Positions 13,392 to 64,000 of a DNA stretch of 64,000 bases are shown here, piece after piece. Made by a program: the position numbers and the translations under genes. The notes under the pieces are model-generated. The model did not search any database and was not told where the DNA came from. It was given only the letters and a program-made list of their open reading frames with translations. Source of the DNA: Thalia democratica (Eukaryota); the NCBI GenBank assembly GCA_965202585.1, contig OZ241830.1:40920001-40984000 (forward strand), written 5' to 3'. Within the stretch, counting starts at the first letter, position 1, and each line of letters opens with the position of its first letter.

Positions 13392-16300
13392 GTTTGTCTC
13401 AGTGTTTTTTCTAAACGTAAATCTCGAACTAAGCTTGTTGTATTAAAGTGCTTAGTTCTATAAAAAAGTTTAATTATCTTCTACTCTCTAACAAGTAGTA
13501 TTTTAGTAGTAACTCTGTATTTTGCAAGTTTTTTACGCAAGTAATTTTGAACTATGTGGTAAGAAAAAAATTAAATATTGTCAAAATATATTTTTCCTAG
13601 CTTTTATTAAAAGCTTTAATAAGAGCTAGAAAGTATTTAATTAGAATTGCTACATAATTGTTTTAACAAATTTTGTATAATGTTATAAAAACTAGTAGTA
13701 TTTTTTAAAGCTTTTGATAATTAAGCTGTACATAACTAAGTTTTCAGCATTAAACACTTAAAATCTTAAGCTAATTATTTTTGAAATCAAACGTTTAGTT
13801 GTAATCATAGTTATTTTCTATTTTTGTTATCTTTTCTTAAATAGTTTTGTAAACTTGGTTTAATTTTTCATTAGTTTACCATTTTATGTGTCTAAATTTT
13901 TTTTTAGGTTTAAGTTTCATTGGTCAAGAGTTCATTTTAACTTAACAAAGAATGCAAGAGTGTGTGAAGGAGAAGTTTTCAGCATTGAAGTTTCAAGAAA
14001 GGGCAATTTAGACCACTCTTTGTTTGCTGAAGTTGAAGTTACTAACAAGAACAACAAAATAATAAATTCTGCTTTTCACAACAACTTTACCCGGCATGTT
14101 CAACTTGATCCGGGTAATTATAAAACACGTTTTTTTTAACAGCTTGATGTTGATGAAAATAATAAAGCTTTAAAAAAGTATGCATTAAAAAGTAATGTTT
14201 TAAAACTCATTTTTGAATGTATAAATTTTAAAAGTTAGGTTGTCCATTGTATTTTTTATTAGTCTTTAACTGTAACTGTTTAAAAGAAAGACAAACTAAA
14301 AATAAGTTAAGGTGGCGCTTAAAAGTAAAATAAAATAATTCTTACTGACAAAGGATTAAGGAAAGATGTTTGGCAATTGTGGACAAAAGACGACCACCTC
14401 GAAGGTCTTAGTAAAAAATTGAAAATAAAGTTCACAAATTTCGTAAATTCCGTACCTCAACTGTTCAGGCTTATAAGAATTAAACCATTCACGCTTACTG
14501 TACTTGATTCAAGTAATAAAAGATGTGGAAAACGTTAGCAAATTTAATATTGAAATATTTTTATAATGACCTTAATAATACATAAATGCAAACTAAATGT
14601 ACTATTTCTTAAAGGTGTAACAAAGCAGAATCACATAAAAGCAAAAGTTGTCCACAACATGGTAAACGATCGACCCACAGTAGGAAACGATAATAGTAAG
14701 TTTTACTTGTTACTACCGTTTATTTATACTGTTTATTGAACAACAAATAAAATGGCTGAAAATTTTTGGTCCTAAGACCTGGTGCATGAAAAAACCTTTT
14801 GGTTATCGAGTCGCACACCAATTGGATACCTTTTAATGTCTATATAAAAAAAAATGAAGTAATAAAAAAAATTTTTTATAAACAATATGCAAAAAACAAA
14901 TACTATATTTATAAATAAATCATTAAAGTTGTAGTTTTACAACAAACTATATATTGCAGCTATGTTACAAAAACATGGAAAAGTTGGTGGCACAGAAATT
15001 TATACTGAACATTATTCTTCGTCTTTGACAAATGGGACACAAAAGTGGACTGTTAGTATGGTCTAAAAAAATAATTTTAAATTTACTCCTGTAAAGTATC
15101 TTAAATTATCTGTCTTAATGCTCAAAATTCTAATTTCAGATTCATGCATTATCATCGATTTCGATAAACGATGGTGAAACTGTAGATAGTTTCGAAGATA
15201 GGCCCTCACATACTGATCTCAACAACAATGATGTAATAAATAGTTACTTAGATAAAAAAGACAACAATACTCAATTAAATTCTAAAAGTAACGTAATAAA
15301 GAATTTCTGGAATAAAAAAATAATAGATAATGAAGAAAGCTTAAAAGAAGATTACGCTAAAAGCGGTAATTTTGAGAAACTTATACAGCAAGATGAAGCC
15401 AACCTTCAGAAAGGTAAACTAGTTTATAAAGTTTGTAAGATTACGAGATCAGTAGTCAAACTTTCGTTTATAGTCGGTAAAAGTTTGATTATTTGCTTTA
15501 AAAAATCAAGTTACAGAGTCAAAGTAGTGTGTTAATGCCTTAGTTCCGCTTTTAACTACTTGAAACAAGGTTATCATTATAACGATAAGTTGTTATTAGA
15601 ACTAGCTATTTTCATGTTTTTTATCTATAATATTTGATTAATAAAAAGTAAAACAAGATGTACTTTACTTAAGCACGTTGTTTGATTTTAAAAACCTTGT
15701 ACATTATTTCATTTTGAAAAGAGTTATGCGAAACAAAATAATTTTTAATCATATTACAGAAATATTAAACGTACCAAGAAAAAGAATGTACAAAAAAAGA
15801 AACGAGGAAATAAATAAATTAGTAAGAAATCTAGCTCAAGTAAGACTTGTTAATCTTAAAACAAAACGCTGCAATTTAAAACTACATTTTAATTTTAAAA
15901 AGTTTTACACCATCCAATAAACAATTGGTCGGCAGCCTTAAATAAATAAAGAGAGATTCTTTTCTTTAAAAATTACTCGCAGGCCGCATTGTATAAAAAA
16001 TAGTCTCTCGCAGGCTGCAATTACTTAAAATTTTTCTAGTAATCATAATTATTACTATTTTAAATTATAATTGCGATAATATATGTAATAAAAAGCCAAA
16101 ATCTAATTGTATTAATAAATGACATCGCGGGCAGCATTTGTTGATTGCTGCAATAAACATTACAAGTTTTTAAAATATAAGTTAATTAGACGACAAATAA
16201 AGCGCTCAAAAAGTTTGGTGAAGGACCTGGTGTACGAAAAATCCTTTCGGTTATCGAGACATGCATCACGGCTACAATTAAATGTATCATTAAACACCAC

Positions 16301-18212
16301 ATTTAAGCTACAATTTTACTTAATCACAAAAAAAAAGTCCTTCACTATAGAATTATCGACAATTTAAGCATTGTCTAGTAAATTGCAACAAAAATATTAG
16401 TTCTTGCTTTTAATCGTTTTCATCTAGTTGGTATATCAAAAACTGTAATTTAATAAAACGTAAACCGGTACAACTAGCCGTTACGGTATATCAAGTATGG
16501 CTTTATTTTATATTTCAATTGGTGCCATAAAAGTTTTATTTAATGATAGTCTTATTTATAATGTTTTTTAAGTCTATCTGAAAATTTATATTCAGTTACT
16601 CATTAACTTTAATAAACATAACTTTTTGTTTCAAGTAAAACACTAATTTAAACAGTATAAAAGTTAGTTTTATGTTTTTATTTACTCAAACAGATTTGTA
16701 TCGTAAAAAATAAATTTAATAATAAAATCAAAAATTAGTTTGTAGTATATATTTACTTCTAGTTTTTTTTTGAATAAAGGCTAGTGTTTATGTACTTTGA
16801 GTATGAATTCAAAAACGTATTTTTTTTGTTGAAGCTACTGATCATCAAAAAAGTTGTCTTAGTATTGTTTATTATTCTCTTGTCAAAGTATCCGTTAGTA
16901 GGCGTAATAGATCAAAATATGGTTAACCACTAATCTTTGTTGAGATATCTATGTTATTAGCGTTTCTTAAGTGAATTGTTATACTAATACTTGATTTTAA
17001 TTTTTTTCGACTAATAAGATTTAATCATTTGCGCCTAGATTTGTTTCTTAAAAAAAGACTAACTCCTGATTATCGCGTTTTTTAAATACTAATACATATT
17101 TATTTACTTCTTATTTAAATTCTATACTTTTATATAACATTTATTTTTATTTAAATTTTACTCTGCTACTTATATATTTTAAAGTATTTGTTATAGTTAT
17201 TATACGCTTTTTTATCAAAAACTAGGTCACTTTGTTTCAGATCGTTAAGTTTTAATTAAAAAACTTTCAAACTGACAGCCTAACGCTCAAACAAAAAATC
17301 GTCCTACAATTTCTAAAAGTCGTTGTAATGAAAATAGCAGAGGTGAGATACAGACGGAATCCAGCAACATTTATGTGTGTAATGGAGCTAAGTGGATTAG
17401 ATGGAAGCCTAAAACAAGTAAAAAGAAAAAGAAGTGTGATTATAACTGGAAGCAAATTGCAAACAGGTTAATTTATCTAATTCTATGTATTTTTTATAAG
17501 CTCTAGGTAAACTTCTGGATGACCGTCATGTGTTTTTGAGCATTAAAACAAAAATACAGTTTAGTACTTATTTTACTAAAGTATGAAGCAGCTTTTTAAA
17601 CAGTTAACATTATGGTTTAACAGTTAACTCCCTTATTTACCTATCTAATAAGGTAGTTCTCGTTTTTAAGTAAAAATAAACATGTTTTTACAACTCAAAA
17701 CCTTTAAAGTCTTTTGTTGACGTTTAAACCATGTTATAGTTGAAAATAACGTGATAGGTGTGTATACGTCACAAAAACAAAACGTGAGCTTTTTTCCACT
17801 TGGAATGAGGCGTCCATGTACTGCAGGGAACACTACTCTGCGTCCCTGGTCACTATAGGCAGCCAAAAAGAAATGGACCAGCTGTGGCGATTTACCAAGT
17901 TTTCTCCGTTTTGGTTTGGTGAGTACCTGGAAACAAGCACGAATATATTCAAATGTTTTATTTTTATACAAAAGTCACCATATTTAGAAAAAAGTTTATT
18001 TAAAACATTATTTTAAAGGTCTCAATCGTAAACTGGATATGGACACTTGGGAGTGGTTGAACAGCAAAGGCATGTCCTACCTCAACTGGTCACCGGACCA
18101 CCCGCACCGCAGTGACGAGTGCGCGTACGTGGGCAGGAAGAAGCTGTGGAAGAGTTTCTCGTGCGAGGGAATTCACCCGAGAGGAGAAATAAAACTTGTG
18201 TGCGAAAAATAA
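1..18212 (+). CDS. FREM1: FREM1/QBRICK-like extracellular matrix protein, 5'-partial, multi-exon (CSPG repeats + Calx-beta + C-type lectin)
   Basis: Hand-traced exons: <1-79, 641-813, 1035-1128, 1295-1471, 1857-2023, 2266-2475, 2659-2830, 3135-3337, 3963-4099, 5510-5661, 6336-6477, 7219-7401, 7717-7934, 8306-8443, 8706-8803, 8994-9153, 9535-9725, 9952-10060, 10212-10346, 11125-11286, 11403-11640, 12026-12229, 12506-12622, 12927-13063, 13228-13391, 13908-14113, 14354-14533, 14615-14695, 14960-15051, 15140-15413, 17279-17466, 17758-17918, 18019-18212 (TAA 18210-18212). All joins are phase-consistent except 15413->17279 (see microexon finding). Recurring CSPG-repeat motifs include YxHDGSE..D..F..SDG, V.PVDDQPP and D.DT. 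The order CSPG repeats, single Calx-beta, C-terminal CTL is the FREM1 architecture; FREM2/3 and FRAS1 lack the CTL. Boundaries at 9952 and 14533 are less certain. Confidence 0.93.
13908..14533 (+). CDS. Calx-beta domain exons of the FREM1-like gene
   Basis: FKFHWSRVHFNLTKNARVCEGEVFSIEVSRKG...VQLDPG|LRKDVWQLWTKDDHLEG...LTVLDS matches the Calx-beta pattern (V.E..G...I.V.R.G ... F.PG ... DD..E ... I.D). Confidence 0.8.
14764..14820 (+). repeat. Short dispersed hairpin element, copy 1
   Basis: TTTGGTCCTAAGACCTGGTGCATGAAAAAACCTTTTGGTTATCGAGTCGCACACCA, homologous to 16204-16268 and 49361-49426. Confidence 0.8.
15927..16150. mobile_element. Degraded hAT-type MITE remnant
   Basis: GGTCGGCAGCC at 15927 resembles the CAGGGGTCGGCA TIR of the 19150 element. 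Repeated CTCGCAGGCCGCA / CTCGCAGGCTGCA / CGCGGGCAGCA motifs resemble its GCGGGCCGCA subterminal repeats. Confidence 0.5.
16204..16268 (+). repeat. Short dispersed hairpin element, copy 2
   Basis: GCTCAAAAAGTTTGGTGAAGGACCTGGTGTACGAAAAATCCTTTCGGTTATCGAGACATGCATCA. Confidence 0.8.
17279..18212 (+). CDS. Cys-containing spacer and C-type lectin domain exons (C-terminus) of the FREM1-like gene
   Basis: RCNENSRGEI..IYVCNGAKWIRW..KKCDYNWKQIANRCVYV..TWNEASMYCREHYSASLVTI..FWFGLN..WEWLNS..YLNWSP..ECAYV..WKSFSC..LVCEK*. The CTL Cys/Trp pattern and WIGL-like motif (WFGL) are present. Confidence 0.92.
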
Positions 18213-30700: not shown

Positions 30701-33700
30701 TTTTATTACTTTGCGTTATGAGGTTTTATTATAAAAAATAGTTGTTGACAACCTTTTTTTTTTATTTGTGTTAACAATACAAAACATTAAGTAATTAAGT
30801 TTCAGGTGAAGGTGAAAAATATCATAAAGTTTCGTACTTACTTACTTTATTATCAATTAACATAGCTTATTATTTTATTGAAATCTTTTTTTAAGTAGTA
30901 ACGTTTCCAGCTATTATCTGCAAAGCCAAGAACACCGGATCATCGTGGCTATATTTTTTTGGGGACACGTTCAAAATCCACCTGCGATCAAAAACCACCC
31001 GATCAAAATCCACCCAGACAAATTTGAGAACTGCTTACCGATCGAGATTAAGGGTTAGAGGTAACAGTGATAGTGAAAAATTAATAAAAAAAATAAAATA
31101 TATATGAAATAAGTTAATATTTTAAAAAATATAAATAAAATCGGAAGGGTTTTGAACGCGGGTGGATTTTGATAGTATACCATTTATTTGATGGATCCTA
31201 ACTATTTTGAAGTAAGCTGAGTGTTGGGTGCATCATCCATGGTGCTCATGTGATTCAGCTTATTTTATTTCTGTTACTACATATACTAAATCTAAAGTTT
31301 TGATTAAAGTTAATAAAATGTTTCTTATGTTTCAAATAATTGATTTTTTTAAATTGCTTATGTTAAAATACTTGGTAAAAATGCCAAGTATAAACAAACT
31401 AAAAGTTAAGTAGCTAACAAAGTTTTCTGAACTAAACTTGCATTCGTTGATATTTTTGATCCACTTATAAAATACTTCATACTTTCTCAAAAATTAAAAA
31501 AGCTACTTTCTAATATAAATTTAACTCAACCTACGCTTTTATAGTAAAGTAATTAAATAATACTTAAATTAAGACTTACGTGTTTTTTGTCAAAAATTTT
31601 TACTGATTTGAATAAAAAAGTGAAAGCAAGTGTTCAGTTTGTTAACTACAAAGATTACATGACAAATTTTGAAGAAAATAATTTATTGATAACTAAACAT
31701 AAAGATACAATTCGATACTTTTTTATAATTAAAAGTTAACTAGTCAGGTTTAATTTACAAGTTGTTTTACAAAAAGAATGTTGTTTCAGCTTGTTCTTTA
31801 AATGAAGTTAAAAAAAGTATAGTATCTGAGCAAGAGCTATTAAGTTTTCTGAGTTATATCAATACAAACTTTAACGTCTAAAAAGATGTATGGCTGCAAG
31901 GAATCACGAAACTTAAACTTAAATTTTTTTACAAATTTATATATTAGCACTTTATATTGATCAAAAATATGTTTGTTTAATACTTTAAACATAACATTTG
32001 TTAAAATAACTTTTCTAAGAAAATTTTTTAGACCTAAAGTTAAGTTTCAATATTCAAAACAATAGTACAACTTTTTTCAATTTTTCTAAATTTCAATTAA
32101 AAAAAATAGTTTAATAACTTTTTTACTAGTATTTTTAGACTTCAAAATAATTCTAAATTCTATAAAACATCTTTTAAACTCATGAAATTTTAAAAGAAAC
32201 TGAATAGCTTACAAACTTCAGAATACGAATGCTTTAAAACAATCAATAAGCAAGAAAACATCTTCTAAAAATCAATTGACAGTGATTATTGTAGTAGGTT
32301 GTATATGCGCTTGGGTGTTATGATTTCAGTTTCAAAAAAGTGAGTTGATTCTGAAAAGTTCAGTTTGTTTAATTCTAATCAACTATTCATGCAGAAATAA
32401 AATCAAGAAAAAAACATTTTTAAAAGTTAAACTAGAAAGTTCTACAAACTAAAAAAGTAAAAAAAAAACTTACTAACTTGAGAATATTTTACAAGTAACA
32501 ATTTAAAAGTAATAATACTAGTAATCTTTTATTACAAAACTTTACTGTTTTAGTTTTTGAGTTTCATAATTTTAATCAGGTTGTTTCAAATATTGTATTG
32601 TTAAGTAGTTTTCTAAAAGAACAAATTTTACTAAAGATTTATTGATTTTTTACTAGTCCATATATTTTAAATTTTTTATTTAAAACATTGAAAGATTCAA
32701 TTAAAAATCAGTGCTAAAATCTTGTATACATTCCATTATTGAATAAATCACATTCAATTTATAAAACAATGATAAATGGTAGGAAATGTGCATTTGTAAC
32801 AAACATGAAGTGAAATTTTTGTAGAAAGAAGACTAAAAAATTACTAACTGTATGGCTAAGGTTAAAAAAGATAATTCGAGGTCAGACAAAATTTAGCATT
32901 TAATCACTTATGCTACGTGATAGGGAGTAAAAAAATTAAAAAACGTTTTAATTGAATACATTGCTGGAACTTTATCAATAGCATTTTAACTTTACATTAA
33001 CAAAATTAAACTATCTAATATTATTAAAACACTAGAAATTCAATAGATAAATATTTAAGCCTGCGAAAACACAATTAAATATTAAAGTTTTTACTTTATA
33101 TACTTTTACATGCTTCAAACATTTAAGGTATAAGATATTAAAAGTATAAGGTATTAAAAAAAAAAAACTCTTGTTTCTTAACCTTTTTTCGGCAGTGTAA
33201 GTTCTTCTGTGGAAGTGAATACATCTGAAATAAATTGCTTAGTTTCACTCTAGTTGAGTATTTATTAAAAATATAAAATATGTTTTGTTTCTGTTAGAAA
33301 ATCAAAATACTGGAATATAAGTGACCAGTATTTATACAATAAGATATACAAGACACTTAATTTCAATAAAACTAGATATATTTCGAGCAATTTTGATCAG
33401 TAGAGTATAAAGCTAACAAAAAACAAGATTTAAAAAGTTATATAATAAGCAAGTAATCAAAAAGTAATCAAGAGATTAATGAAAGACAAAAGCAGTTAGT
33501 AAAAACAAAAATAATCTAAGTTTATTTACCTTATAATTAATCTATAGTAAAACTAAAAATCAATGTAATGAAAACAACACTTATAAAGTATTATAAAAAT
33601 AAAGAAACAGTATAGTAAAATCTTTTTGCTTGGTTTCCTTAAATAAAATCAAATAGCTTCTAGTTTATTCAAATCGAAAAAATTATTACAAGTTTTAATA

Positions 33701-36700
33701 AATTTTTATCTATTTAGATTACAACTGTTTCGACATGTTTAATAATTAACCAAATGAATACTGATGAGAATTGCTTGAAATGTATTTGGTTTTATTAAAA
33801 TCAAGGCACACAATTTCAATAAAACCAGATATATTTCGAGCAATTCTCATCAGTAGTCATTTGGTTAATAATTCAACATGCGGAAACAGTTATAATCTAA
33901 ATGGGTTTAAATTTATTGAAACTTGTATTTATGTTTTCGATTTGACTAAAATAGAAGCTATTTGATTTTTTTTAAGGAAACCTGTTTTATGTAAATAAAA
34001 ATATTTTGACTATACTGTTTCTTTATTTTCGTAATAACTTATAAGTTCTTATTAAAATCAAAATACAACAACATAATTATAGTTGTAACAAGTTATTTTG
34101 TTATTTAACTTAACATAAATTAAGTTAAGTATTGTAGACTTTTAAACTTCAAAGTTCTGTACACTAGTTATTTAGATCACATTTAGATATCTAATAAACA
34201 TAGCCTAGTGTTTTACTATGTACCAACTCTAAAAAGTATATCTATAAAGCTTGCAAAAATTTTTTTATAAAAATTAAATTATTACAAAAAAAAGGCTTAA
34301 CTGTTTTCACTTTCAACACAGCATAAGCTATGTGAACGAATCATAAGCAAACGTGAAGAAAAACAATTACTTTAATGATTTTAAACTTAAAAGCGATTTA
34401 GAGTGATCAATAAAACATGGCATAAAACTTTAATCGCTCAGAAAGTTGTATACCACCCAAAAAACAACCGCAAAGTTTATCCAAAGGTGTAAGTCGAGGA
34501 AAGATAAAAAATTAATCTGACACCTTAAACTTTAGAAATTTATTCAAAGTAACTTAAATTCTCACACATGATCAAAAATAAGATGGATCAGTTTAATTCC
34601 AGTTTTAAGAGAATACGTAATTGCAACTTTGTAAATTGCTTTCAAATGAACGTGTTCTGAACTTAAGAAAACTATTTTTATATTCTCAGTCACCATAAAC
34701 TGCAAGTGATCAATGTAATAAAAAATGTACTTTATTCACGTTTAAAAAAGACTTTGCGAGCGGTAAAACATATGTAGCAAGCTTTAAACTTTCAGTTTAA
34801 CAGGTTAAAGTTACGTCACTGGTTTAAAAGTCGTGCGATAGCCATCTGCGGCTCTCTTTGAATGACAGTAATATAATTGTTCTACCTTTAAACCTTTGCT
34901 GCTCATCATGTAATATTTCGTATTTAGCTACCATTATAATTGATTTCAATACCTGATACGCTTAATGTACTTTTATCCTACGCACATAAGGGGATTTGGT
35001 TTTTAATGTCTTTTTACTAAGTTGATGTTTGAAACAAAGTACACATTATTATTACTAGTCATTAAGAAACATAACTTGAAATCAAAATTACGCACTTAAA
35101 ATAACAAATTTAATCAGGGCAGTTCGCATTTTTTAGATTATAAATTTGTATTATTAACAATTGAATTTCCTAATGCCATGTAAAAAATCCACTAAAATTA
35201 TTCTCTTTTTGTCTGATAGTATAAAGTACTTTTACGGCGAAAAAAAGTATTTTAAAAGATTAATCTTTAAACACAGCTTTAATAGAAACATAAGTTTCTA
35301 AATTCTTTTTGTGAATTTTATTACAGCTTGAAGTCATAAAAATAGATTAAAGAATATAGATTTAATTTACCTTTATTTACTAAAAGTTAATGAAAGTGCA
35401 TCTAAAAACTTTTTAGTAGTTCAAGTGAACAAAAAATACTTACTTTTGATACTTAAATAAGCCACTGGTGAGTAAATTCTTATTTATTTAAAGCAAATGT
35501 TTTAAATAAAAATGCAAACACACTTTTGGTGTACGAAGGTATTTATTTTATTATAGTTTTAGCAAAACTTGTATTTTAATTAGGAACAAACGAAAGTAAT
35601 TGAAAACAACTACTATCACTTAGAGTTGTGTTTTTACAAAGTTCCTAAGAGTTTGAACTAATAAACGTTTATTATTACAGAAAGTTTTGTTGTATTAAGT
35701 TTTATTCACGAGAAATAAAATATTAGCACTGTATCTTTAAATACCATCTATAATAAAATATAAGTATAAATAAAAAAAGATTGTTTACAAATTTAGCATT
35801 AAAAATTCTAGAAACAAAGTATACAGTATCACAAAAGTCATCTGTACTAAATATAGGTTCTAAATTAATGGCAGTAACCTTATCATGATTAATAGCAACT
35901 ACGAAAATCTTGTTTAATATTTCCGCTAAATGTAGAAGGAAAGTGTTAAAAGATTTGGATTTAGACAGGATGTAATAATGCGTCAAAAGAAGATAAAATG
36001 CACATTTCTAATAAAGATCACGTTTTGTCTTTTGATGTTTTTTCAATGGATTTTGTGTTTCGCAATAAATTTTTCAATTATAAAGAAAAAAAATATAAGT
36101 ACCTCATTTCTCAAGAAAAACTGTGATGAATACTTTAATGATTCTTGTTACTATAAATATTTTTATATTTCGACTATTTTTAAAAATTTTCTGTGATATG
36201 GTATGACCTGCTTTTAAAAATGTGTACTAATTTGGAGAAAAAAAAGTTAAATCAAAATTTTATTTTAATTTTAATCAAAAGTCTTTAAATTGATCAGTTT
36301 ATAAATTACGAAATGTAGGCAAAAGTAGTATTTGGCGTTTAATATTTGTTTCTTAAACTATAGGTGTTTTTCTGTTATGTTTTTTGTTTATAGCTGAAAC
36401 ATAACATAGTTTAAAACCGTTTACAAGAATGAATATTTTGCATATAAGTCAATCATAAAAGAATTTTAATTTTAATATGCATTTGTAACCGCGAATTAGT
36501 TTTCAATTTAAATTTCTACCCTATTTTTTATTATTATAGACCAAAACTTTAACTTACACCTGTAGCTAAAACCTTAAGATATTTAATACAAAATAAATTT
36601 ACATAAGAAACCAAGTTTTAATCTCTTTAGTACCCGTAATTTTGTAATTTTTAAAAACCCTTAATTATGCTCTCCCACAAAAATAATACGTGATAGAAAA

Positions 36701-39700
36701 ACCTTACATAAGATAGACATTATAGAGTTTTTTAGATTAAAATGATTAAACTGCATTTTAAGATATTAGTTAAGCAAAATTTCTAAACGTTTGTTCAAAA
36801 CAGACTTCATGTTTATGAAAAATCTTAAAAACTCATTAAAATGAATTATTGGTTTAATAGTTCCATTAAAAATACTAATATTATAACTTATTTTAAATAG
36901 CTTTTAAACAGTTTGCAACAGCTTAAAAACAGTTAAACCTTTGGTTTAGTATGAAGCTATGAAGTATATGTATAGTTTATATAAAAAGTGATAAAAAATA
37001 GTTATATCTGTCATTTTTAGCTTCTTATAAGATTAGTTTTGATGTTTCTTATTTAAAAAACTTTAATCACATAAATGATCTTAATCTTATAACTAAAAGT
37101 GTTAATATATTTAGTACACTTGAATAAAAAAAATCAAGACTTTTCTACTAATGATTATTTAGTTCATAAAGTGTATATTACAAAAAGTGTATGACAATCA
37201 TCAGAAGTATCTTACTCAATATTTTATAAAAAAAAATACATAAGCGATTAACTATTGTAAAGCAATTAGTTGCTGAAGTGTATTGTCTGTGATTTGTAGA
37301 CAAAGTAAATCTTTTTTTTAAATTATTTAGGTTATTTGAAATTATGAATAAGGAAAAAATTCCAGGCTACTTTGTATAAAATGAAACATAGAAATAGTTT
37401 TAAATGCAAACCATTAATCTGCTTAAATGAGAAAATTAAGTTTTACAAGCAACAAGAGTTTACTTTCTAGATTTATAAAAAAGCTTTCGATAATTACTTA
37501 AGTGAAATAATTTAACAATTTTTTTCAGATTAATCTAAGGCAAACCAAAAATTTTCACCGACAAAACTATTGAAAATAATTATTCATTATTTTTAGAGCT
37601 TATTTTTTACCATAATGTTGTTGGCAACTAATCAGAAATTGCAAACGAACCTCCATCTCCAGACGACGTTGCGAATTCATCGTCATCGGTCGTTTCAACT
37701 GCTGGTGTCGCACTTTCGGTAGAATAAACATGTTTGTCAACATCAGGAGTTATTGTCATTTGCTGCTCATCAGTAAAAGTGACATCAGGAGTGTTTGTGG
37801 TTGGTTCTTCCGTGTCAGATACATCGGGAATTACATCCAGTTCATCTGAATCCGTAACTTCTTGTGCATTTTCTGGTGTTAACCCAACAGCAGGAACTTT
37901 GACTACAAGAATAAGAATTATAAAAGTATAGTGTTTTAACAAATTATATTAGATAATGTATAAAACGGTTGTGTTTACATTTATAAATACAAAATTTTAT
38001 GACTAATATTAATTAGTATAATTAGTTTAGTAAACATTGCTTGATTAAATCTAATTAGTTTAATTTTTATTTATTGAGTTATTTATGTTTTAAATAATAC
38101 TTTAGTTGTTTTAATTTACCTTTTTTATATAAGTCTTTTTGTAAAATCTGGCAACATATACAAGGATTAAATAGTAATGAGTATACGTCACAGACTAGAA
38201 TATACAAAAGAAAAACAATACCGTGATTTAAAAACATTTATTTTCAAACAAAACTTAACCAACCTTGACCGTTCAAATCTTCAGTAAAATAAGCTTGTAC
38301 TCTAAAATTAGGATTTTCGAAGTTCAATTTAACTTCAGCATATATTTTCTCATCTGTTTTATTTATTTAAGAATGCTTTTAATAATAATATAGAAGTATT
38401 TCAGTTGAACTATTACACGTCTTAATTTTTCAAAAGATAATTATTAAACTTTTCTCATAACTTTAAGGTAAAATTTTCGTTTTGTGTAAACGTAAGTATT
38501 AATTAGAGTAAACTAAATTTAACAAACTAATTTTAATTTAAAGCGAAGAAAAATACTTTTAAAATACTATTTCTCGCTAGTTTTTCAAGTTTTATGCATG
38601 AAATAAAGTTTTATTTGTAATAGTCAGAACACTAAAATTAAAAAAACACAATAAAATTAGAGTGTAGTTTACTTTTTAAACTATTACCTTTATCTAAATT
38701 TTTGTTAACAATGCTGTTGATACTATCAATGTTCTCCATAATCTCGTTTCTGTGTAGATTTAGTTTGTGCTCTATTTTTGGTGGCACATCGTTGTATTTT
38801 CTTTGCACGTTGTAGCGAACTAAAAGTGGATTTGAAAAGCGTTTTCGTAATCGACCTGCAATAAGTATAATTAAAACAATGAAGTTTACAACAGTAAAAA
38901 ATATTCACTAAAAAATACTATTTATTTTTATATTTTATTATTAACGATATTTTAAGGTTTTGGCTCTTTTGCTACCGTTGTTGTTATTTACGTTTTGTTT
39001 TTTTTAGTTTATAAAGTCTTGTTATAACTTTATTATTTAAAAACGTATTTAAATGTATATATTTATTTTTAAGTATAAAATCTAAACAAATGAAAAATAT
39101 TTATAAACTAAACGACCAAATATTTTGACTGTTAACACTAAATATTTAGAAAAAGATTTGAATATAATTGTGACCTGTTTTAATCTATATACCAACTTGC
39201 TTTAAAGTACTTTTAGTAACAATAAATCTTTTACTGGAATATATTTAAACAAAAAAAAGTACTGGTTACAATCTGTTTAATACTAACGGTGTTCTCTTTT
39301 CCTCAATGGTCTGGATTCGTTTGATACTGAAAAAAGTAGTTATAGTTTGAAAGTGTAATTGTGAATAACAGTAAATAAAAAACTTACTTATAATTAGAAA
39401 CAGTGTGATAGCAGCTATGTAAAAGTGTTTAGTCTTCATGTTAAGCTTATATTAATTAAAAATAAAAAGTTTGTTAGTAGTTTTGTTACTCCTGCAAAAA
39501 AAAAAACTTGTTCATTTGTATGATCAAAACAAACTAAACTAGTTTCAATTATTCTAGCTTAAACTATAGATTCAAATACTCTAGCTTGATTTAACAAATA
39601 ACAGATAAGTTTTAAGTTCATTTCTTTGTAGAACAATTTTCGCGTTTAAAACTGAAAGTTATCATGACTTGGTTTAATGTAACCAAACTACAAAGTCATT

Positions 39701-44829: not shown

Positions 44830-47800
44830 GATAAGGTGATAATTTAAACTTAATCACTTTCTGCAGAGCCCACTTAAAAGGCTTTCAAATAGTTTTGTAG
44901 GAAAATGATATTTAAAAAATTTCAGAACATTTGTTTGATAGAGACAAAAAAAGTCTTTAATTTTATATAAATATATACTAATATACTAATACATACACAA
45001 CATTTTACTACAAATGTTTCACTATTTTGATAAACAATTAGTTCATTAAAATAGTTAGTAGATAAATAAATATATACATACTTATATTGTTACACTATAA
45101 TATACATTAATTAACATTAAATTAATAATTTTTAAATCTTCAAATTATTTTTATACTTTAAGTTCAGAAAAAGTTAAGAGTTTTAATAAAAGTTATTTTT
45201 TAGTACTTACTATGTCTTATGAAGTTTTAAGTTAGTTTAACTAGTTATTACTTTCCGATTACTAAAACGATATCACCCCTTTCGGAAACCCTGGTTTTGA
45301 GAGATGCATTTCAAAGAAAGGTGAAACATTGAAACATAAGTTCAAACATGACTTAGTATAGTTATACAATAACAAGCTTTATACGTTGAACTTTCTACTT
45401 TAACATTTTATCCATGCACTTAAACTTAAAATATTATATATTGTCCTTAAAACATCACATTTAACACACTACTTATATTTGTTGTAAGTTTTTTACAAAA
45501 ATTTAATAGTAATAAAAAAATATACTATTTCTTATTTACGAGGGATATAATTCAACCTACTTCAACTTCAATTAAAACTTTTTGTAAAACTCAAAGTAAT
45601 TTTTTAAACTATCTATCAGTATTTACTACGCTAATAATAAAATAGTCATTTCAGTTTGTAAACACTAAAATCTAAAACTCAACCGCAGTACAATCACAAA
45701 ATGTTTAGTACTATAAATATACATAAAAGTGTAATAGATAAACTTAACAATTATTGTAGCTAAAAAAACGGCAAGTTTGTCTAAAACTAAAGTGTTTTAT
45801 TTACACAATAATAAATATAAAGAACTTTTACCATAATTAAAACATATAAAATTGATTATGGTTAGATTTAATTGCTATATTTACCATTTAATATTGGTAG
45901 CTAAATGTTTTATAAGCTGATTTACAAAATAATGAATGTTTTATTTAAAGTGAATTGTTAATGTATGAAACATGAAGCAAGTTGTTTAAAATAAATTTGA
46001 AAAACTTAAAAGTACTGTTGAACCACTGTACATTTATTTGGTCTCAAACTAAGAGTTTAAGCACATTTAAATAAAAAGTTAATCCACTTTTTCTCATGGT
46101 TTAATTGTAATGATAAACTACAATTGTTAATGACAATTAAATTAAAATAGTTATCATTAGACTCAACATTTAAAACGTCATACTCAAACTTTGTATGTTT
46201 CATTAAATTAAGTTTTTATTTCAACTTACTAATTTTAAAATCTAATAAACTAAAAGCTTAATAAGTTTTAAGCCTTTTATAAAAGTTTAGAAATTTTTAA
46301 CGATAATTCCTAAAACAAAAAAAAATTGTAAGTTTTTTAAGCTGGCATTTTTGAAAAATCATTATTTGTAAGATTTTACAACTCTAACCTTAATTGAAAA
46401 ACATGTGTTTTCAAATAAAAATTAGTACAGCTTAAAAAAACCAGTAAAACTATAAAGTGCTTAAACTGTACTTAAAACTTGTAAAATAATTCTTCTAAAG
46501 CGTAAAAACCACTAAGAAGTGTTATTACAAAACAATGTATACACACAGTTCGTTATTGTTGTGCAATGTTTTATTTAATTTCTGACAAAATAAATCAACG
46601 TTTAAAAGCGTGATAAAAACTAACATGTTGTCTTCATTATTTCTATTAAGTAGTGTGTTAAATGTGATGTTTTAAGGACAATATATAATATTTTAAGTTT
46701 AAGTGCATGGATAAAATGTTAAAGTAGAAAGTTCAACGTATAAAGCTTGTTATTGTATAACTATACTAAGTCATGTTTGAACTTATGTTTCAATGTTTCA
46801 CCTTTCTTTGAAATGCATCTCTCAAAACCAGGGTTTCCGAAAGGGGTGATATCGTTTTAGTAATCGGAAAGTAATAACTAGTTAAAGGGGCGTTTTTCAA
46901 ACAAAAACTACAATCATAGAACTTTCACATTCTAGCTTGCTTTTCAATGTTTAATTCTGATGTAAGATTTGAACGACAATGCCCATTTTGCTCATACAAA
47001 ATATAGAAAAAGATAAGTTTTTATGACAATCTTTACCGAAGACAGCGATATTGTCCCTTTGGAAACGATTTTGGCTGTCAAGGTGTGTTAATTAGTAAGG
47101 TGGCAAAAAAATGAATGGTTGAACAACTCATAAAAGGGGACACTTATTTTCTTTAGAGCATCTAGTAGGGGCCGTTTATATTTAAAATTCTACCAAGGGG
47201 TGTACTTATGACAAAGAGTTTAGAAAACTCTACTTTAAACTTACATAAAGCTTTTTATCCTTAAACTTTTTACTTTTTGTGTTAGCACTTGTATTTATAA
47301 AATTTAACTAAACTTAAACAAAAAGTTTAGTTTAAATGCTTAATTTCGTATAAGATCTTGGTTAAATTGTTTAGACCTAAGAGTTTATTGTCATCTGTTT
47401 AACCATAAATGAAAATTTTTTATATAACAAACAGAACTTTAACTTTATTTTCTTAAATACTTTTTTTACGAGTAAAAGTATTTTAAACTAAATAAAAATT
47501 TTTGTTAAGGTCTTTAGCTATACTTTGTTTTTTTGTATTAAACTGATATAAAATTAAAATAATAAATTATAGTTAAAAAAAATCCAATTAACTTAGTTTT
47601 TAACACTCAAAATAAGACTATTTTTAATTCACTAACTTTAAAGTGAAAATCAAAATTTTTCTTTGAAATAATAATACTTACTACAACAAAACTATTTTTT
47701 TTATAACGAGTAAAGTATACTACTACAACTTTCAAATTGGGAATTTTAGTTAGTTTAATCGTATTAAAAGTAATGTAGCAAATAAGTAAATAAGTATATA

Positions 47801-50605
47801 AAATTTGTACAATTAGATTTTTTAGGCAGTTTTATGGCTACTTTGTTTTTAAAAGAGCTTCTATTTACGTAAATAAGACTAATTAATCGAAATATAAAGT
47901 AAGTAAATTTAAATGAAAAATAAAACATCTTTATTTGTTTGTTTTAAAGTTTAACAAGTCTCTTTTATGAAAATATTGTTTGTAAACAATTTTAGCAATT
48001 TTTAGCAAAACAAGGCTAGAAAAATAAAGAAACAAATAAATTACGAAAGTAGGTGAAAAACAGTCTTGCATAACTTATCGTATTAAAATTGGAATGTTTT
48101 TATAGAAACAATAAATTTTTGTTTTGCTGTATGAACTATGTATTAAAATTTTTTTTTTTTAGAAAATATTTAAAAATCAAAATTGAATAAAAAAAGTTCT
48201 AAAACTATATATGTTATTTAACATAAGTTTCAAAAGGAAAATTTTTGCTGATAAATTAATTCTAAAAAATACAAAGAAGTAAGTTTTATTTATTAACTCG
48301 AAAATAACCGTCAATTCTTTCAGGAGTAATGATTTCAGTTTCGACAAAATGAGTTGACTCTGTTTTGGTTAAAAAAAGGTTTTAGTATCAAAAATTTGTT
48401 ATAACTCATTTTTTACAACGACATACAAAAGCAAAGTGCTAAAAAAACCAAATAGTTCTATTTTTACCAAGTCTAAAAAAGCTAGTTCTAAAATTCTTCT
48501 CATATAAATATATCAAAATAATTTATTCAAAAAACAGTATATACCTAAACTATTACCTAAAGCTTTTAGATAGTTTAAAACTTTAATCATGTTAAACAGT
48601 TAGCCTATTTTTCATATAATAAAGTCTAATAGAATATTTTAAACAATTTTTTTATCTGTTTATACATTTTTACCTGTAATAGTTTAAAACTTATTAGTGT
48701 AATTTTATAATAAAAATTGAAGAACTTTACAAAAAAGTTAAATATACCTTTTTTTGGGAGGTATTCTTCTGTTGAATTGTAGATTTCTATTAAAAAAATG
48801 TTTAAATTAACAAACTCCATATTTCAAGCATATATCTATTTTAAGTTTTAAGTAATAAATTGTATCAAATTAAAGCTGTTTAAAAGCAAGCAAAATGTAA
48901 GTTTATTAATTTTAAAAAACACCTTTTATTTATTTAAATAAAATAAAAAAGATTGTAGTTTAGCTAACAAAAACTATATCTTGAGAAATAAAATTTTTCA
49001 AGCAATTAAGTATTCAAAAACAAAAAATGTCTAATTTTTCAAATTGTTAGTTTTTGCATACCATATATACCACCCAAAATTAAACCTCAAAGGTAATCCA
49101 AGTTTTTTGGTATACATACATATAAGTTAAAACCGTTACTTAACCGTTTATTCAAGTTTAAGCTGGCTTTATTTTTTGATATATAATAAGTATTTTTTTT
49201 TTTTTTCAATAAGATTGTTTTTATAGCAGACATAATTAAACATTTATGAATAGACTATGTGCATAAGCTATCTATTTGCTGAAAAATTTTGTGTGTTATA
49301 TTTAAAAAAAGCTTAAAAAGTTTTATATATATGCTGTTTATTGACCGATAAAACAAAAATGCTCAAAAAGTTTGGTCTAAGGACCTGGTGTACTAAGGAA
49401 CCTTTCGGTTATCGAATCGTACACCACATGCTTATAAAGTTTCTTACGAGCGATTACACTTTTTTTTTATCATTTGAATATTAATATCTTTAGTAATAAG
49501 ATAATCCGTTTAACGAAATGAAAGAAAAGAAAACTAATCAAAAATTAGCTGAATTTTGTGTTTAAAAATGTACTTAAAACTTGTTTAGTAACATAAGAAA
49601 TAAAAAAATGTATATTACTTTAAATTGATCTGAAAATATCATCAAAAATAACTTTAATCATAAATATTAAAAGTTTAATTTAATTTCTAAAAATAATACA
49701 TTGTTGGTGAACTCAGAGGTACTAATACGCAAACTATCGAATAAAATATATTTGAAAGATATAGATTTTAGAATAATTAAACTTATTTATGTATATTTTG
49801 AGTCATCAAAAAAAAAAAATCTTTGAACTTTTTACGTAAAAGTTGTTTCTTCTAATTTTGCAAACTTTAACATAAAAGCTCTTTTGTATTCACTTTTGAC
49901 TTTAAATTCGTGGCTTGTCTTAGACAGTTATCGATTTATGCTTATTTGCAATCAATTAAAAATCATTGCTGTTTCCGTTTAACTGACAATGAGGTGTTAA
50001 TAAAAATGTACCAACAGAGGATGTTTTTACGTCATAGAACGATTAAGTTACCGGCCAGCTACCAAGTAAAAAAAAAATTCTTGGAATACTTATACTTTTT
50101 GCCAGCATTAGTTGCAGTTTTATAAATTACAAATATTTTATTTTTTACCTTCATCACCAGAAGAAGTTATCATGTCGTCGTCATCAGATATTTGTGGAAA
50201 ATTCACTGTTGAGGTTGCTTTTATGAAATCAGAATCATCTTTAATCATATCGACCGTTCCTATGTTCTTATTTGTGGCTTTGGTATAAGGATCTTTAAGA
50301 AATATTTCATTTTAAAGTTATAAAAACTTTGCTAGAAATAAGGCTTTATATTAAAAATACTGAACAGATTACCATTTAAAAAATATGTAAATAGGTTTTC
50401 GAAACTAAACTACTAAAATAACTGATTTTGCGAATACGTAAAATTTAATAAATCCTATAAGTTACATATCTTTAAACACTAACTTTTATCAAAATAGTTG
50501 CTGTAAACTTCGTTAATTTTCCGAGTCTTAATTATATTATTTCGTAACCTAAAACTGCTGATCCTTTTCCCACTATGATTTCTTGAAAATAATTTGTAAG
50601 GTCTT
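27326..50605 (-). CDS. Orphan multi-exon Ser/Thr/Asp-rich, proteoglycan-like protein (5' end not found)
   Basis: Phase-1/phase-1 AG..GT exons, all multiples of 3 and open: 50605-50549, 50292-50149, 48359-48309, [41974-41939, 40897-40841 tentative], 39326-39288, 38855-38724, 38353-38264, 37902-37651, 33224-33183, 29700-29641, 29529-29470, 28937-28881, and terminal 27774-27326 (..ENPLYYY*). Every junction codon is sense. Two acidic SSGD motifs are present. The function is inferred. Confidence 0.7.
30961..31181. mobile_element. MITE-like element
   Basis: TCAAAATCCACC occurs near the left end (repeated internally) and as GGTGGATTTTGA at the right end. The ends are GC-rich and the middle contains an AGGGTTAG-like motif. 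Confidence 0.6.
33581..34044. repeat. Long imperfect palindrome (arms ~33581-33800 and ~33813-34044)
   Basis: The reverse complement of the left arm aligns along the right arm with scattered substitutions and a small indel. A third partial direct copy lies at 33359-33403. Confidence 0.85.
37651..37902 (-). CDS. Acidic Thr-rich exon ending in DDDEFATSSGDG
   Basis: CTTGTAG acceptor, GTTCGT donor, 252 nt, GC-richer than the flanks; it lies within ORF-track 37628..37942. Confidence 0.8.
44791..44826. repeat. (TA)18 microsatellite
   Basis: Uninterrupted TA run read directly. Confidence 0.95.
45236..46886. repeat. Perfect 240-bp inverted repeat (45236-45475 / 46647-46886), 1171-bp spacer
   Basis: Base-by-base comparison of 45236-45475 with the reverse complement of 46647-46886 found no mismatch. 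Confidence 0.95.
49361..49426 (+). repeat. Short dispersed hairpin element, copy 3
   Basis: GCTCAAAAAGTTTGGTCTAAGGACCTGGTGTACTAAGGAACCTTTCGGTTATCGAATCGTACACCA. Confidence 0.8.
50149..50292 (-). CDS. Acidic exon ending in DDDDMITSSGDE
   Basis: TTCTTAAAG acceptor, GTAAAA donor, 144 nt open frame DPYTKATNK...SDDDDMITSSGDE. Confidence 0.75.
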
Positions 50606-59600: not shown

Positions 59601-60419
59601 AGTTAACTTTTATTATCTTTCTGAATTAAACGACTAATGGTAGGTAGTTATTAAAGGGACATGTTTTTAATACAAGTTTCGTTTTTTTTTTGTCAAAAAT
59701 TCCTTATAGTTTTTACATATATAAAATAAAAAAGCAGAGTTATGCTTAAACATGATTTATGAAAAATATTTTGCAGTAAAATTAAGTAAAATAACCTTAC
59801 AATTAGATTAATTGTATATAACTTATAATATATTTGTACAATTCAGTAAATTTAAAGTTAGTTTGACACTAATTGTTTTCAAGAATTAAGTTATGTTTAA
59901 ACAATGTAAAATTAATTTAGTGAACTGCTTAAATAAAGTTTATAGCTAAAGTATAAAGAATGTCTTACTAAGCATAAATAGCTTTTTTTAAATGAGCTAA
60001 CTTTTAAATAAAAACTGAAGTCAAAACTTTATGTTTTAAAAGTTACAATAGTCTTTCTTGAAGGGTTGTGATTAGGTAAAACTTTCATATTTAAATGTTA
60101 TACAAATCATATAAGTTAATATGAATATAGTTTTTGCTTAAAGTTAATAAAAAAATTGTACAGAATTGTAATTGTAAACAGTAAACTGAAAAAAATAATT
60201 AAAAAGTGTTAATAAGTATTAATAAAACAGCAAGTTTTACACAATAATTAAGATTGAAAATTTCTTGTTGGTATAAGTTTCAATTCAATTTTTCAACTAT
60301 ATGAATGCAAAAATTTTCAAATTTAAATAAGTTCTACAGTTAAAAAATAAAACATTTTTAATAATTTATGCAAATTTATTAGTTAAAAAATTCACAGAAG
60401 TTTATACTTGAGTAAAATA

Positions 60420-61196
60420 ATGACCAGTTACGGTGTGAAAATTTTACGCTGGGGTGAAAAAGGTAAATGGAAAATGACATCACTTGGGTTCGTTGTCAAT
60501 GGTAACTACTGTCCTGCATACACAATATTCAATGAAAGTAAACAGCAAGACGAAGTTAAAGATGAAAGAAGTATGGTGGGTTTGTTCAGAGAAGACTATC
60601 CGCATCTGAGGTATCTGGTCAAGGGTATTTACAAAGCGTTCCTTAAAATGCGTACCAATGACAAAGTCAACATAAACAGACAGTCAGCAGAGTTTACTGC
60701 GGATCCTAAAAAGGAACAGTACAGAATCCAAATCGAACCATTCAAAAGTAAGCTGAATGTGAGAGCTGAAAGACAGTGCTTGAATGGCTGTTGGAGTACT
60801 TTAGCGTTATCCTTTAGCGTTGTTGATGGAAAGTGCAGTGTTGGCAAGTATGGCGATGGTAAATGTGGTGATGAGTTCACAGCGAACAACGATGAGAAAA
60901 GTGATGATCTAAGTCGGACAAACGAGTTAAAGTGCATTTTAGGTCTGATGAACAAGTTTGTATACGCATATCCTTATCTCGAGAAAAAGTTCGACAATAA
61001 AATTCGTAATTTATTTCATGAAATGCGTAGGCTGGACAAACAGAACACAAACCAGCAATCTATGGAGTTTATTTTTCTTAACATGGGTACCAAAGAAGCA
61101 AATGTTATAAAACTAGCTTCACATCTGCAGTTACCAGATCTAGCTGAGTTTCAGAAAATTTCAATGACTAAAATTAACAGAGAGTGTAATTATTAA
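60420..61196 (+). CDS. Intronless hypothetical protein, 258 aa from the first ATG (MTSYGVKILRWG...RECNY*)
   Basis: Longest ORF in the window (777 nt), with coding-like composition. Diverged paralogs nearby share amino-acid blocks despite DNA divergence, which indicates a real coding family. No domain recognised. Confidence 0.75.
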   Translation: MTSYGVKILRWGEKGKWKMTSLGFVVNGNYCPAYTIFNESKQQDEVKDERSMVGLFREDYPHLRYLVKGIYKAFLKMRTNDKVNINRQSAEFTADPKKEQYRIQIEPFKSKLNVRAERQCLNGCWSTLALSFSVVDGKCSVGKYGDGKCGDEFTANNDEKSDDLSRTNELKCILGLMNKFVYAYPYLEKKFDNKIRNLFHEMRRLDKQNTNQQSMEFIFLNMGTKEANVIKLASHLQLPDLAEFQKISMTKINRECNY

Positions 61197-62379
61197 TTGT
61201 TTAGTTTGTGATAAATACGCCAGAATAAACTGTCAAAGACCATAAAAATAATTTAATTTAAGTTAGTACTGGCTCAGTTACAACAGTTTTACGTTATTTA
61301 CTACTCATTTTGTGTTACGGACTTATGTTTTTATTTTATAAGTTAGTAACGATGTGTAATACAGTTTTATAAAAAATGTGCAATTGTTTCATTTATTTCT
61401 ATTAATAATGTATGCTTAAATAGCTTATTTAGTTTGAGTTTTTTATATTTAAGCTTTCAGTAGAATGTCATATTGTAAGAAAGATGTGCTACAAACATTG
61501 TTTTATAAACTGTAAGTCTAATTAACAGATGAAAATATAAGATAATACAAAACTTATTTTACAGTGTTCTATGATAATGTTATAACACTATCTATCGACT
61601 ACTTTTGAATAAGTTTTTATTTCACTTGTATAATGTCAAAAATCATTTTTTAAACTATCCATGTATTGAATTTTTTTACTTTTCGTAATACTTAATTTTT
61701 AATTTTAACCTGGTTAGATAATATAACCAACCTTTTTTTTGCATGAAGGTTATACCAAAAATGACATAAGCAATTTTTTAAATAATTTAACTAGATCACA
61801 AATTAGTTAGATTGTTATATAGTGTTATTATAATATTAGATGTTAGGATATATGTAAATTTAAACTAGACAAGTTTGATTAAAAAATAATAATTGAGTTA
61901 AACGAATTAAATTACTGAGGCAAAAATAACAAACCAAAAAAAAATTACAGCTCAAAATTGACATAGTTAAATAAGGGTGCAAATGAAGCTATGTAACATA
62001 ACTAGCTCAAACATTTTTAAACACCAATTAGTTTTAATAATTTTATCTTTTTTCAAACTATATAGTAAACGTAGTTGGTTAAATTTCTTGAAAACTTTAG
62101 AGTTAAAGTGAAAAAATTATAAGAAAAAACACTAACTGTAAACAGTATGTTTTCTTTTTTTTTTTAATTAAAGAGTGTAACCAACTTTTGATAAACAGCT
62201 AATTTTTAGAGTAAATGATTTTATAAAATTTGGCTGCAGGACTATTAAAATTTTAATAATTCCGAGTTATTGTTGATAATCGTTTTTAATAATTTTTGTA
62301 TACCATAAATAGTTTACTAATATCAATTAAAAAAACATAAATACTTTACATTTTTTAAACATTCATACTATTTTCAAAA

Positions 62380-62515
62380 CTGCATCAAAACGACATAAAA
62401 ATAAGAAAAACTATTCGCAGAATTCAAAGCAGATCCTGAAAAAGAAATACTTGCGGGCTACCGTTCAAATTATGTAAGAAAATTGACAGTGAAAGTGGAA
62501 AGACATCACAAAACT
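62380..62515 (+). pseudogene. Truncated paralog fragment of the 60420 ORF
   Basis: LFAEFKADPEKEILAGYRSNYVRKLTVKVER aligns with SAEFTADPKKEQYRIQIEPFKSKLNVRAER. There is a frameshift in the upstream A-run. Confidence 0.7.
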
Positions 62516-62547
62516 GACAAAGTTTAGAAGTAAATAATCTGCCAAGC

Positions 62548-63050
62548 TTGTTTGAAGCAGACTATCCGCATTTGAGACAATTAAGCACGGATATACGTAA
62601 AGGATTCTGTTTCTTGCGGGACAAGGACGTAGAAAACAAGAGGAAACAGTACGTAGAATTCACAGCAAATCCCGAAAGGGAATCACGTCAAAACTATCAA
62701 CCAAAACCGTATGAATGTAAATTGACAGTGAAAGTGAAATACAGTGTTTGAATGACGCTTGGAAAAGTTTAGTGTTGTCTGTCAGCGTTGGTAAGTACGG
62801 TGACAAATACACAGCTCACAACAACGAATCTGCTAACAATGACGAACTTATGAGCCAGACAGCCGAGTTAAAATGCATTAAAGGTTTAACGGAGAAGTCT
62901 GTAGCCGCCTTCAACAAATTATTGAAACGTGCGTTAACAGAATCAATTCAACTTGTATCTAAAAGTTTAGAAACCGACAAACCGAAAGTTAAAAAATTGG
63001 CTTCAGTCCTGTAGTTACCCAACTTGGTTAAGTTTAAGAAGGACTCTTTA
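62548..63050 (+). pseudogene. Frameshifted and nonsense-disrupted paralog of the 60420 ORF
   Basis: FEADYPHLRQL..EFTANPERE..KLTVKV, then a 1-nt deletion at ~62740, then QCLNDAWKSLVLSVSVGKYGD..TAELKCIKGL..KLASVL*LPNLVKFKK. This parallels FREDYPHLRYL..QCLNGCWSTLALS..TNELKCILGL..KLASHLQLPDLAEFQK, with TAG where the intact copy has CAG. Confidence 0.85.
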
Positions 63051-64000
63051 AAAAAAAAACAAAAATAAAGTAAATACTGCAAGTGTAACTTATACGGAAC
63101 GTCCTTGAAAGGTCTTTCACAGAACTTAGCGTAACTATAAATTGTTTATCTTAGTAGTAACTCAGCTATAGTAATTTTATTTATATTAATGACTATTTAG
63201 TTTGCATTTCTGTTTATGTATTTGTTTTATATGCTAAATTATATACTAATTCTTTTATATACTAAATGTTTAATAAAATATTTCTTTAAACTGGAATTGA
63301 ACCATTTTTATCTAGTTTTTATATACAGCAAACTAACAAACTTTTGTCAAGTTTGAAATTCTTATTAACATCTTTATATAGAATGACTGATCGTAAGAAT
63401 GGTGTAATACATAACATATAGAAATTTCAAAAGTTTTAATGGAAAAAGTTATAATTATTACTTTTTTATATTAATTGACAGTTACTTAATATTATATAAT
63501 AGTTTTTATTGTAAATGACAATATATGTGAATCAGTGGTTTAAATTATAATACTATAGTTTACTTAAAAAAAGGTTTAATGTAACAAAACTAGATTACGG
63601 CCACGCATTTAAGAAATTTTAGATGAAATTAATCAAAGCTGATGATGGCACTTTAAACAAATAGTTGAGTTATAAGAAAACGTCTCTAAATAAACTACTA
63701 ATAAAAAACTACTTAATAATAAGCTGTTTGTTTAAAAACGAATGAACTAAAAATATTTCAGAAAACTTTACTCTGTCAACCATTAGTTGCTTTAAAACAA
63801 TTAAAAAAATTGTTTATTATATCAATTTTTGATAATACTTTTAAGTAACTATTAGTTTAATGAGTAAAGGTCTTTGAAATGTTAAAGAACTTCAGTATAA
63901 GTTTATGATGACGAAGTACAAAGCAAATTTAATAGCTTTTAAAACTTTAACAGTTGTGATAAACTAAAAATTAAAAAACTTAGTTCGAGCTCCAATAAAT

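Follow-up and report, generated by a model that had tools for sequence, protein, structure and literature searches.

Proteins of the PC4-like class, to which PC4, the PUR repeats of Pur-alpha, Whirly/PBF-2, MRP1/2 and the MS2/PP7 coat proteins belong, are built over about 150 amino acids (aa) as four strands then a helix, a linker, and again four strands then a helix (PMC7549692). Their helices are swapped between the repeats, which fold only as a pair; there is no sequence conservation between the families, and single-stranded DNA or RNA is bound on the surface of the sheet (PMC7549692). Here we describe gene A, an intact open reading frame (ORF) on the + strand of a 64,000-nucleotide (nt) stretch of the Thalia democratica genome (contig OZ241830.1, positions 40,920,001 to 40,984,000; hereafter the window), together with its decayed tandem paralogue, copy B. 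Gene A is probably, at a rough probability of 0.6, a functional and lineage-restricted protein-coding gene built from two copies of a new domain, in a family that evolves by birth and death and in which copy B has decayed. It is a real lineage-specific gene and not the relic of a virus or a transposon.

The protein encoded by gene A recalls the PC4-like class in its tandem repeats (two, in the family sometimes three) of a small antiparallel sheet plus helix, in its basic and soluble character and in the existence of both two- and three-repeat forms. When the boundary is moved by one strand, unit 2 of gene A can moreover be read as four strands then a helix. The units differ from those of the class by their size, 95-110 aa vs about 70, two units and the linker spanning about 220 aa; no match to the Pfam PurA, Whirly or PC4 families appears even at an expect value (E) of 10, and the 50 best PDB matches of the confident unit model include no member of the class. 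The likeness may serve as a lead, an analogy rather than membership. A second comparison concerns the MHC-like alpha1-alpha2 platforms (MHC I, CD1, EPCR, ULBP/RAE-1), which are also made of two tandem modules of ~90 residues, each a sheet plus a long helix, and which prevail among the weak matches of both fold searches of the PDB, a database where MHC chains are greatly over-represented. None of these matches rises above chance (E 0.08-0.9, probability 0.03-0.3, template modelling (TM) score <=0.45, root-mean-square deviation about 10 Å or more), and the gene A protein has no signal peptide or membrane anchor; as no match was significant, a relation to these platforms was rejected. Resemblances to GIY-YIG, KilA-N and the SAP motif were likewise dropped because none was returned as a significant match. 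The comparison with orphan families in birth-and-death evolution is one of evolutionary mode, not of function: gene A shares with them a narrow lineage, a host-like composition and the pairing of a decayed tandem paralogue with an intact neighbour kept by purifying selection, and it differs from them by a minimal array (one live copy, one dead), an old duplication and a well-defined repeated fold, unlike many young orphans.

Gene A and its flanks are made up of the following parts, where P0013 is a distant relative with three units and where A-type sequences, the closest relatives of gene A, fall into two clades:

60342 to 60419, + strand: conserved 5' leader of gene A, with the motif AYAG inside; all clade-2 contigs lose similarity upstream of 60342
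60420 to 61196, + strand: gene A, a 777-nt intact ORF (258 codons and the stop)
60420 to 60704, + strand: repeat unit 1 (aa 1-95); a hidden Markov model (HMM) built from the P0013 units matches aa 5-93
60705 to 60743, + strand: inter-unit linker (aa 96-108), seen between the two HMM matches and in the alignments
60744 to 61079, + strand: repeat unit 2 (aa 109-220), its loop longer than that of unit 1 by an insertion of 11 residues
61080 to 61193, + strand: conserved C-terminal tail (aa 221-258), present in A- and B-type sequences and not in the three-unit P0013
61197 to 61512, + strand: 3' flank, alignable with clade-2 contigs at about 79-85% identity; probably the 3' untranslated region plus neutral flank

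An earlier reading of the letters alone, the first-pass annotation, had reported this intact 777-nt frame, and its 258 codons plus stop were confirmed at 60420-61196. A word-seeded search of 5.8 billion protein clusters returned two clusters of exactly 258 aa, with identities of 93-96% and 83-84% to gene A, and both this length and the frame are kept in 11/11 orthologous metagenome sequences; gene A is therefore not a chance ORF. The idea of a chance open frame or a dead gene has practically no probability left: a run of 258 open codons is expected with a probability of about 2e-8 at the ORF's own composition, the conservation of the orthologues, with a ratio of nonsynonymous to synonymous substitution rates (dN/dS) of 0.23, refutes it, and the confident model of the repeat unit rests on covarying paralogous units. 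Moreover, contig L007 is collinear with 59706-61911 at 92%, which represents ~2.2 kb of orthologous flank from a related population, and contig L001 is collinear with 60166-61651 at 95%, so that gene A lies in a stable orthologous, single-copy setting. The product (30 kDa) is basic, with an isoelectric point of 9.1 and 42 Lys+Arg vs 32 Asp+Glu, and hydrophilic. Neither a signal peptide nor a membrane segment nor any hydrophobic stretch was found in it (maximum Kyte-Doolittle 19-residue mean 0.88), and Pfam was blank, in agreement with the first-pass annotation, which had seen no domain, signal peptide or transmembrane helix. Its remark that the guanine plus cytosine (GC) content is similar to that of host exons also held: the ORF has 38% GC vs 34-46% in the neighbouring host exons and 21-22% in the flanks, GC and third-position GC (GC3) agree with host exons, and the correlation of relative synonymous codon usage is r = 0.60.

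The protein had been described without any repeat structure, an internal tandem repeat having been overlooked. It consists of two units of a ~95-aa module followed by a C-terminal tail of 38 residues, and its two halves share 28% identity (E 1e-6, self-BLASTP). P0013, with its three units, aligns to the gene A protein in two registers, and an HMM made from these three units only matches aa 5-93 of gene A at 73.9 bits and aa 112-217 at 36.4 bits, when the best score among 500 shuffles was 12.6 bits. An alignment of nine units leaves four invariant positions (Arg10, Trp17, Glu45 and Arg78). From this unit alignment AlphaFold2 produced a confident model, with a predicted local distance difference test score (pLDDT) of 89.4 and a predicted TM score (pTM) of 0.80, in which strands 4-13, 16-26 and 29-37 are followed by a helical hairpin (45-59 and 61-83) and a last strand (87-93). 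In P0013, units 1 and 2 are separated by a 65-residue spacer (aa 101-164; contig L003 655-846), and short stretches resembling the start of a unit were observed there and in the C-terminal tail; these may be degenerate extra units.

The search for relatives was extended with a HMMER scan of 1.84 billion representatives using the family profile, which retained four real relatives, three of them newly added (P0012, P0013 and P0014), the other three matches being repetitive artefacts or noise. P0012 (204 aa) and P0014 (130 aa) are of the B type, that is, related to copy B, and P0013 is the distant three-unit protein, of 396 aa. Searches seeded with P0013 and P0012 gave no further members and no intact full-length B-type protein in the collection. 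All relatives lie on short contigs (0.5-2.3 kb) of marine metagenomes with about 30-39% GC, several of which come from Tara Oceans runs, as do the Logan contigs of the family; over the public metagenomes as a whole, few distinct contigs carry it. Outside the family, Pfam searches with the ORF, the units and the relatives gave only sub-threshold matches that were inconsistent between members (best E 0.014-0.18, 12-15 bits vs cut-offs of 26-27), the best PHROGs match was not significant (E 0.034), and phmmer and profile searches of PDB sequences reached E 0.57-0.84 at best. No relatives were found in IMG/VR, scanned with the ORF and with P0013, or in phage genomes, JGI metagenome contigs and GTDB prokaryote genomes. 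The family had been called unassigned, and a clear hit to a well-known family or to an ORF of a transposable element (TE) had been named as a finding that would refute the idea put forward; neither sequence nor structure searches, BFVD included, gave a clear match. Taken from these comparisons, the ~95-residue alpha/beta module is a previously undescribed domain, and the family has so far been met only in one group of AT-rich marine animals.

The intact gene A is under purifying selection. Comparison of seven A-type coding sequences, belonging to the two clades, gave a synonymous divergence (dS) of 0.32-0.38 and a dN/dS of 0.23-0.27 between clades. The protein-level constraint put forward by the first-pass annotation is borne out by these values. 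The six conserved blocks that it quoted can all be seen when the ORF is aligned with its neighbours, and the dN/dS check that it had suggested yields purifying selection between the A clades and not neutrality.

Downstream of gene A, the same strand carries two further sequences of the family:

62397 to 62505, + strand: displaced B-type fragment of ~110 nt, which runs from the end of one unit through the linker into the start of another
62523 to 63112, + strand: copy B, the decayed tandem paralogue, 3' flank included; similarity of coding type spans about 62536-63050

Copy B starts ~1.3 kb downstream of gene A. A tblastn search of the whole window with the gene A product returned only gene A itself, copy B (outer bounds 62536-63026, E 3e-21) and the fragment (62417-62506), and a six-frame scan of the 64 kb with the unit HMMs found no copy beyond gene A and the B locus, where they give partial unit matches. 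Compared with intact relatives, copy B is truncated once at the 5' end, contains one frameshift and one premature in-frame stop, and lacks internal sequence in at least one place. Its DNA is 88% identical to the B-type contig L004 (753-1355), which shares its source sample with an A-type contig, and 84% identical to L005/L006; B-type loci are disrupted in 3/3 places seen. When B sequences were compared with one another piece by piece, dN/dS was 0.4-4.2, roughly neutral, vs 0.2-0.36 between A and B at a dS of about 0.9-1.7. No shared flanks of the two copies were found, which argues for an old duplication. Judged from these sequences, copy B is an old paralogue that was long constrained and is now a pseudogene. 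The notion of birth-and-death evolution is supported by such an old paralogue, now about neutral and broken in all three places; the rapid turnover that had been attributed to the family was overstated, the A/B duplication being old.

The count of one intact copy, one fragment and one pseudogene given by the first-pass annotation stood for the intact gene A and the decayed copy B, and not for the fragment as an independent third lineage. The fragment matches L004 at 862-907 and 941-974 with 83% and 91% DNA identity, and it forms an 87% direct repeat with the same stretch of the window's copy B (family D1). To gene A it shows 43% aa identity over 30 residues (tblastn E 0.47), a match that is weak alone. 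Since its junction matches the B type and its identity to A is low, it is a displaced part of a rearranged B locus rather than a third lineage. The family grew by duplication at two levels, namely of units within the gene (two here, three in P0013) and of the whole gene in tandem (A and B).

Sample ERR1726819 of Tara Oceans (L004, L007 / L012) holds two A-type variants (P0003 and P0004) plus a B-type copy. As this sample contains all of them, both paralogues and allelic variation of A coexist in one population.

The origin of the gene has also to be considered, since a retro-, virus- or TE-derived origin had been proposed. It is very improbable that the ORF is part of a TE or of an integrated virus or that it was captured from one recently. 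The points that could suggest it are circumstantial only, namely a coding region free of introns, the lack of a known domain and a decayed copy nearby. Neither copy is bounded by terminal inverted or long terminal repeats, the region around 57-64 kb containing only short AT-rich matches of 70-80% of the chance type, and no transposase, reverse transcriptase, integrase or capsid domain was detected with Pfam and PHROGs in or beside the ORF. Relatives are absent from IMG/VR, phage genomes and BFVD, copy number is low (just two loci in 64 kb), and the collinearity of 2.2 kb of flank with a related population, the host-like codon composition and purifying selection over a dS of about 0.35 all speak for a resident gene.

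The family might alternatively be an ancient retrocopy of an intron-bearing gene, later duplicated in place, which we regard as improbable. In its favour, the coding region is uninterrupted in a genome where the FREM1-like gene nearby is divided into numerous short exons, and all relatives, the three-unit one included, are single ORFs on genomic contigs. Against this, no homologue or parent gene outside the family is detectable among about 15 billion proteins, and no poly(A) tract or target-site duplication was found flanking gene A, although an ancient event would have lost such marks. The leader is also relevant here. The motif AYAG lies 22-30 nt upstream of the ATG in all members of the family, whether of the A type, of the B type or with three units (L002, L003, L004, L007 and L011; 60390-60419 in the window), and this conserved AG just before the ATG suggests a spliced or trans-spliced leader, AYAG being possibly the splice or spliced-leader (trans-splice) acceptor of gene A. 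Thus, of the earlier description as a single-exon gene, the uninterrupted coding part holds, and the term intronless is established for that part only.

With regard to function, the two modules might pack against each other as a pseudo-dimer, which would act as a soluble, non-enzymatic intracellular binding scaffold, with a variable recognition surface formed by the fast-evolving sheet and loop of unit 2 plus codon 174. Nucleic acid would be the first ligand to consider, as in the PC4-like, PUR and Whirly proteins, because of the basic charge and the repeated sheet-plus-helix architecture. This combination of a pseudo-dimer, a soluble scaffold and a variable surface on unit 2 is put forward by analogy, as a tentative and rather doubtful proposal.

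Several results weigh against our interpretation of gene A and of its product. The binding scaffold is deduced from architecture and charge only. The gene A unit is predicted as three strands, two helices and one strand, vs four strands then one helix in the PC4-like class, and Whirly and Pur-alpha were matched (E 0.28-0.95, TM 0.13-0.23) only with the unreliable model of the whole protein. Indeed, AlphaFold2 applied to the whole ORF with the family alignment performed poorly (pLDDT 43), which leaves the packing of the two units without a confident model, and that a single unit folds confidently alone in AlphaFold2 is a mild argument against an obligatory swapping of helices. Foldseek found no significant neighbour of the unit model with pLDDT 89 (best E 0.25 in PDB and 0.045 in BFVD, all TM <0.45) and, with the whole-protein model, chance-level matches only. 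On the side of selection, dN/dS within clades ranges from 0.23 to 1.0, on 11-20 substitutions per comparison, and the ratios of nonsynonymous to synonymous polymorphism (pN/pS) calculated by region between the window sequence and L002 are based on very few changes per region:

Unit 1: pN/pS 0.23, window vs L002
Unit 2 strands: pN/pS 1.13, window vs L002
Unit 2 loop: pN/pS 0.60, window vs L002
Unit 2 helices: pN/pS 0.10, window vs L002
C-terminal tail: pN/pS 0.35, window vs L002

Two features of unit 2 are drawn from these comparisons:

60744 to 60905, + strand: fast-evolving patch of unit 2 (aa 109-162), strands plus variable loop; pN/pS 1.13 and 0.60 vs 0.10-0.35 elsewhere
60939 to 60941, + strand: hypervariable codon 174, encoding Leu, Ser, Gly or Lys among the seven sequences

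At codon 174, four different codons occur, up to three bases apart, and Arg is found too in further cluster members. With so few changes, these data give only a hint of uneven constraint across gene A.

Alternatively, gene A might serve recognition or defence in a conflict between host and parasite or over reproduction, with the sheet, the loop and residue 174 of unit 2 under diversifying selection and with the gain and loss of paralogues reflecting an arms race. For the immune-conflict type of gene that the first-pass annotation had also named, the fast patch of unit 2 and the hypervariable codon, from few sequences, are the sole hint. This possibility differs from the explanation that we favour in function, not in anatomy. 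In its favour, pN/pS is ~1.1 and 0.6 in aa 109-162 against the lower values of the other regions, codon 174 shows multi-base differences among near-identical alleles (four codons, and five residues with the further cluster members), a tandem paralogue accompanied by a pseudogene is present, and the family is lineage-restricted. The counts are however very small, too few for a site model, and the overall dN/dS is well below 1; the locus consists of one intact and one dead copy with no expanded array, neither a signal peptide nor a known immune domain is present in the protein, and, at a dS of 1 or more, the duplication is old. A role in conflict is consequently unlikely in our opinion. In a bolder version, the module would be a truly new fold and its tandem copies would form a pseudo-dimer for recognition, with the sheet and loop of unit 2 and residue 174 diversified by selection. 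Such intracellular proteins, recognising a nucleic acid or a factor of a parasite, would make up a class not known before and confined to one lineage of marine zooplankton; we find this version distinctly unlikely. Returning to the favoured explanation, namely a functional lineage-restricted gene of two modules, its evolutionary pattern is ordinary, as orphan genes with dead paralogues are common. The novelty here lies in the absence of any known family, and no new mechanism is claimed. With no relative detectable by sequence or by predicted structure, the gene A family would qualify for database entry as a new domain of unknown function that comes with a confident model. Moreover, it offers a small and clean example of lineage-specific protein growth, by duplication of units within the gene (two vs three) and by tandem duplication of the gene followed by decay, and it shows that ocean metagenomes suffice both to retrieve genes of this kind and to test them for selection.

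The rest of the window is very AT-rich, with 21-28% GC per 2-kb window, and the gene A/B region stands out in it as a GC island of 38-41% between flanks of 21-22% GC. Some 42 kb of low-coding DNA separate it from one other recognisable gene part:

1 to 18209, + strand: apparent 3' part of a FREM1-like gene, with Cadherin_3 (CSPG-type) repeats and C-type lectin exons

The Cadherin_3 (CSPG-type) repeats are encoded in many short + strand exons from position 1 to ~14 kb and the C-type lectin domain by two exons (17750-18209), and together these exons resemble the 3' portion of a FREM1-like matrix gene, whose presence marks the window as animal DNA. Scanning the window for Rfam families and tRNAs gave no match.

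Several repeats were observed in the window. A perfect inverted repeat of 240 nt (45236-45475 / 46647-46886), the arms of which are separated by 1171 nt, could represent the ends of a young DNA transposon, or else an assembly artefact. The palindrome at 33632-33982, with 170-nt arms that are 88% complementary and a spacer of 11 nt, looks like a foldback element or one of the type of miniature inverted-repeat transposable elements (MITEs). A GC-rich direct repeat of 62 nt with 76% identity, found at 16208-16269 and 49366-49427 with 33 kb between the two, may be a piece of a dispersed short repeat. Lastly, an exon-like ORF on the - strand (37631-37948), which encodes a hydrophobic N-terminal stretch and then an acidic region rich in Thr, Asp and Glu with no Pfam match, is possibly the first exon of a gene for a secreted, mucin-like protein.

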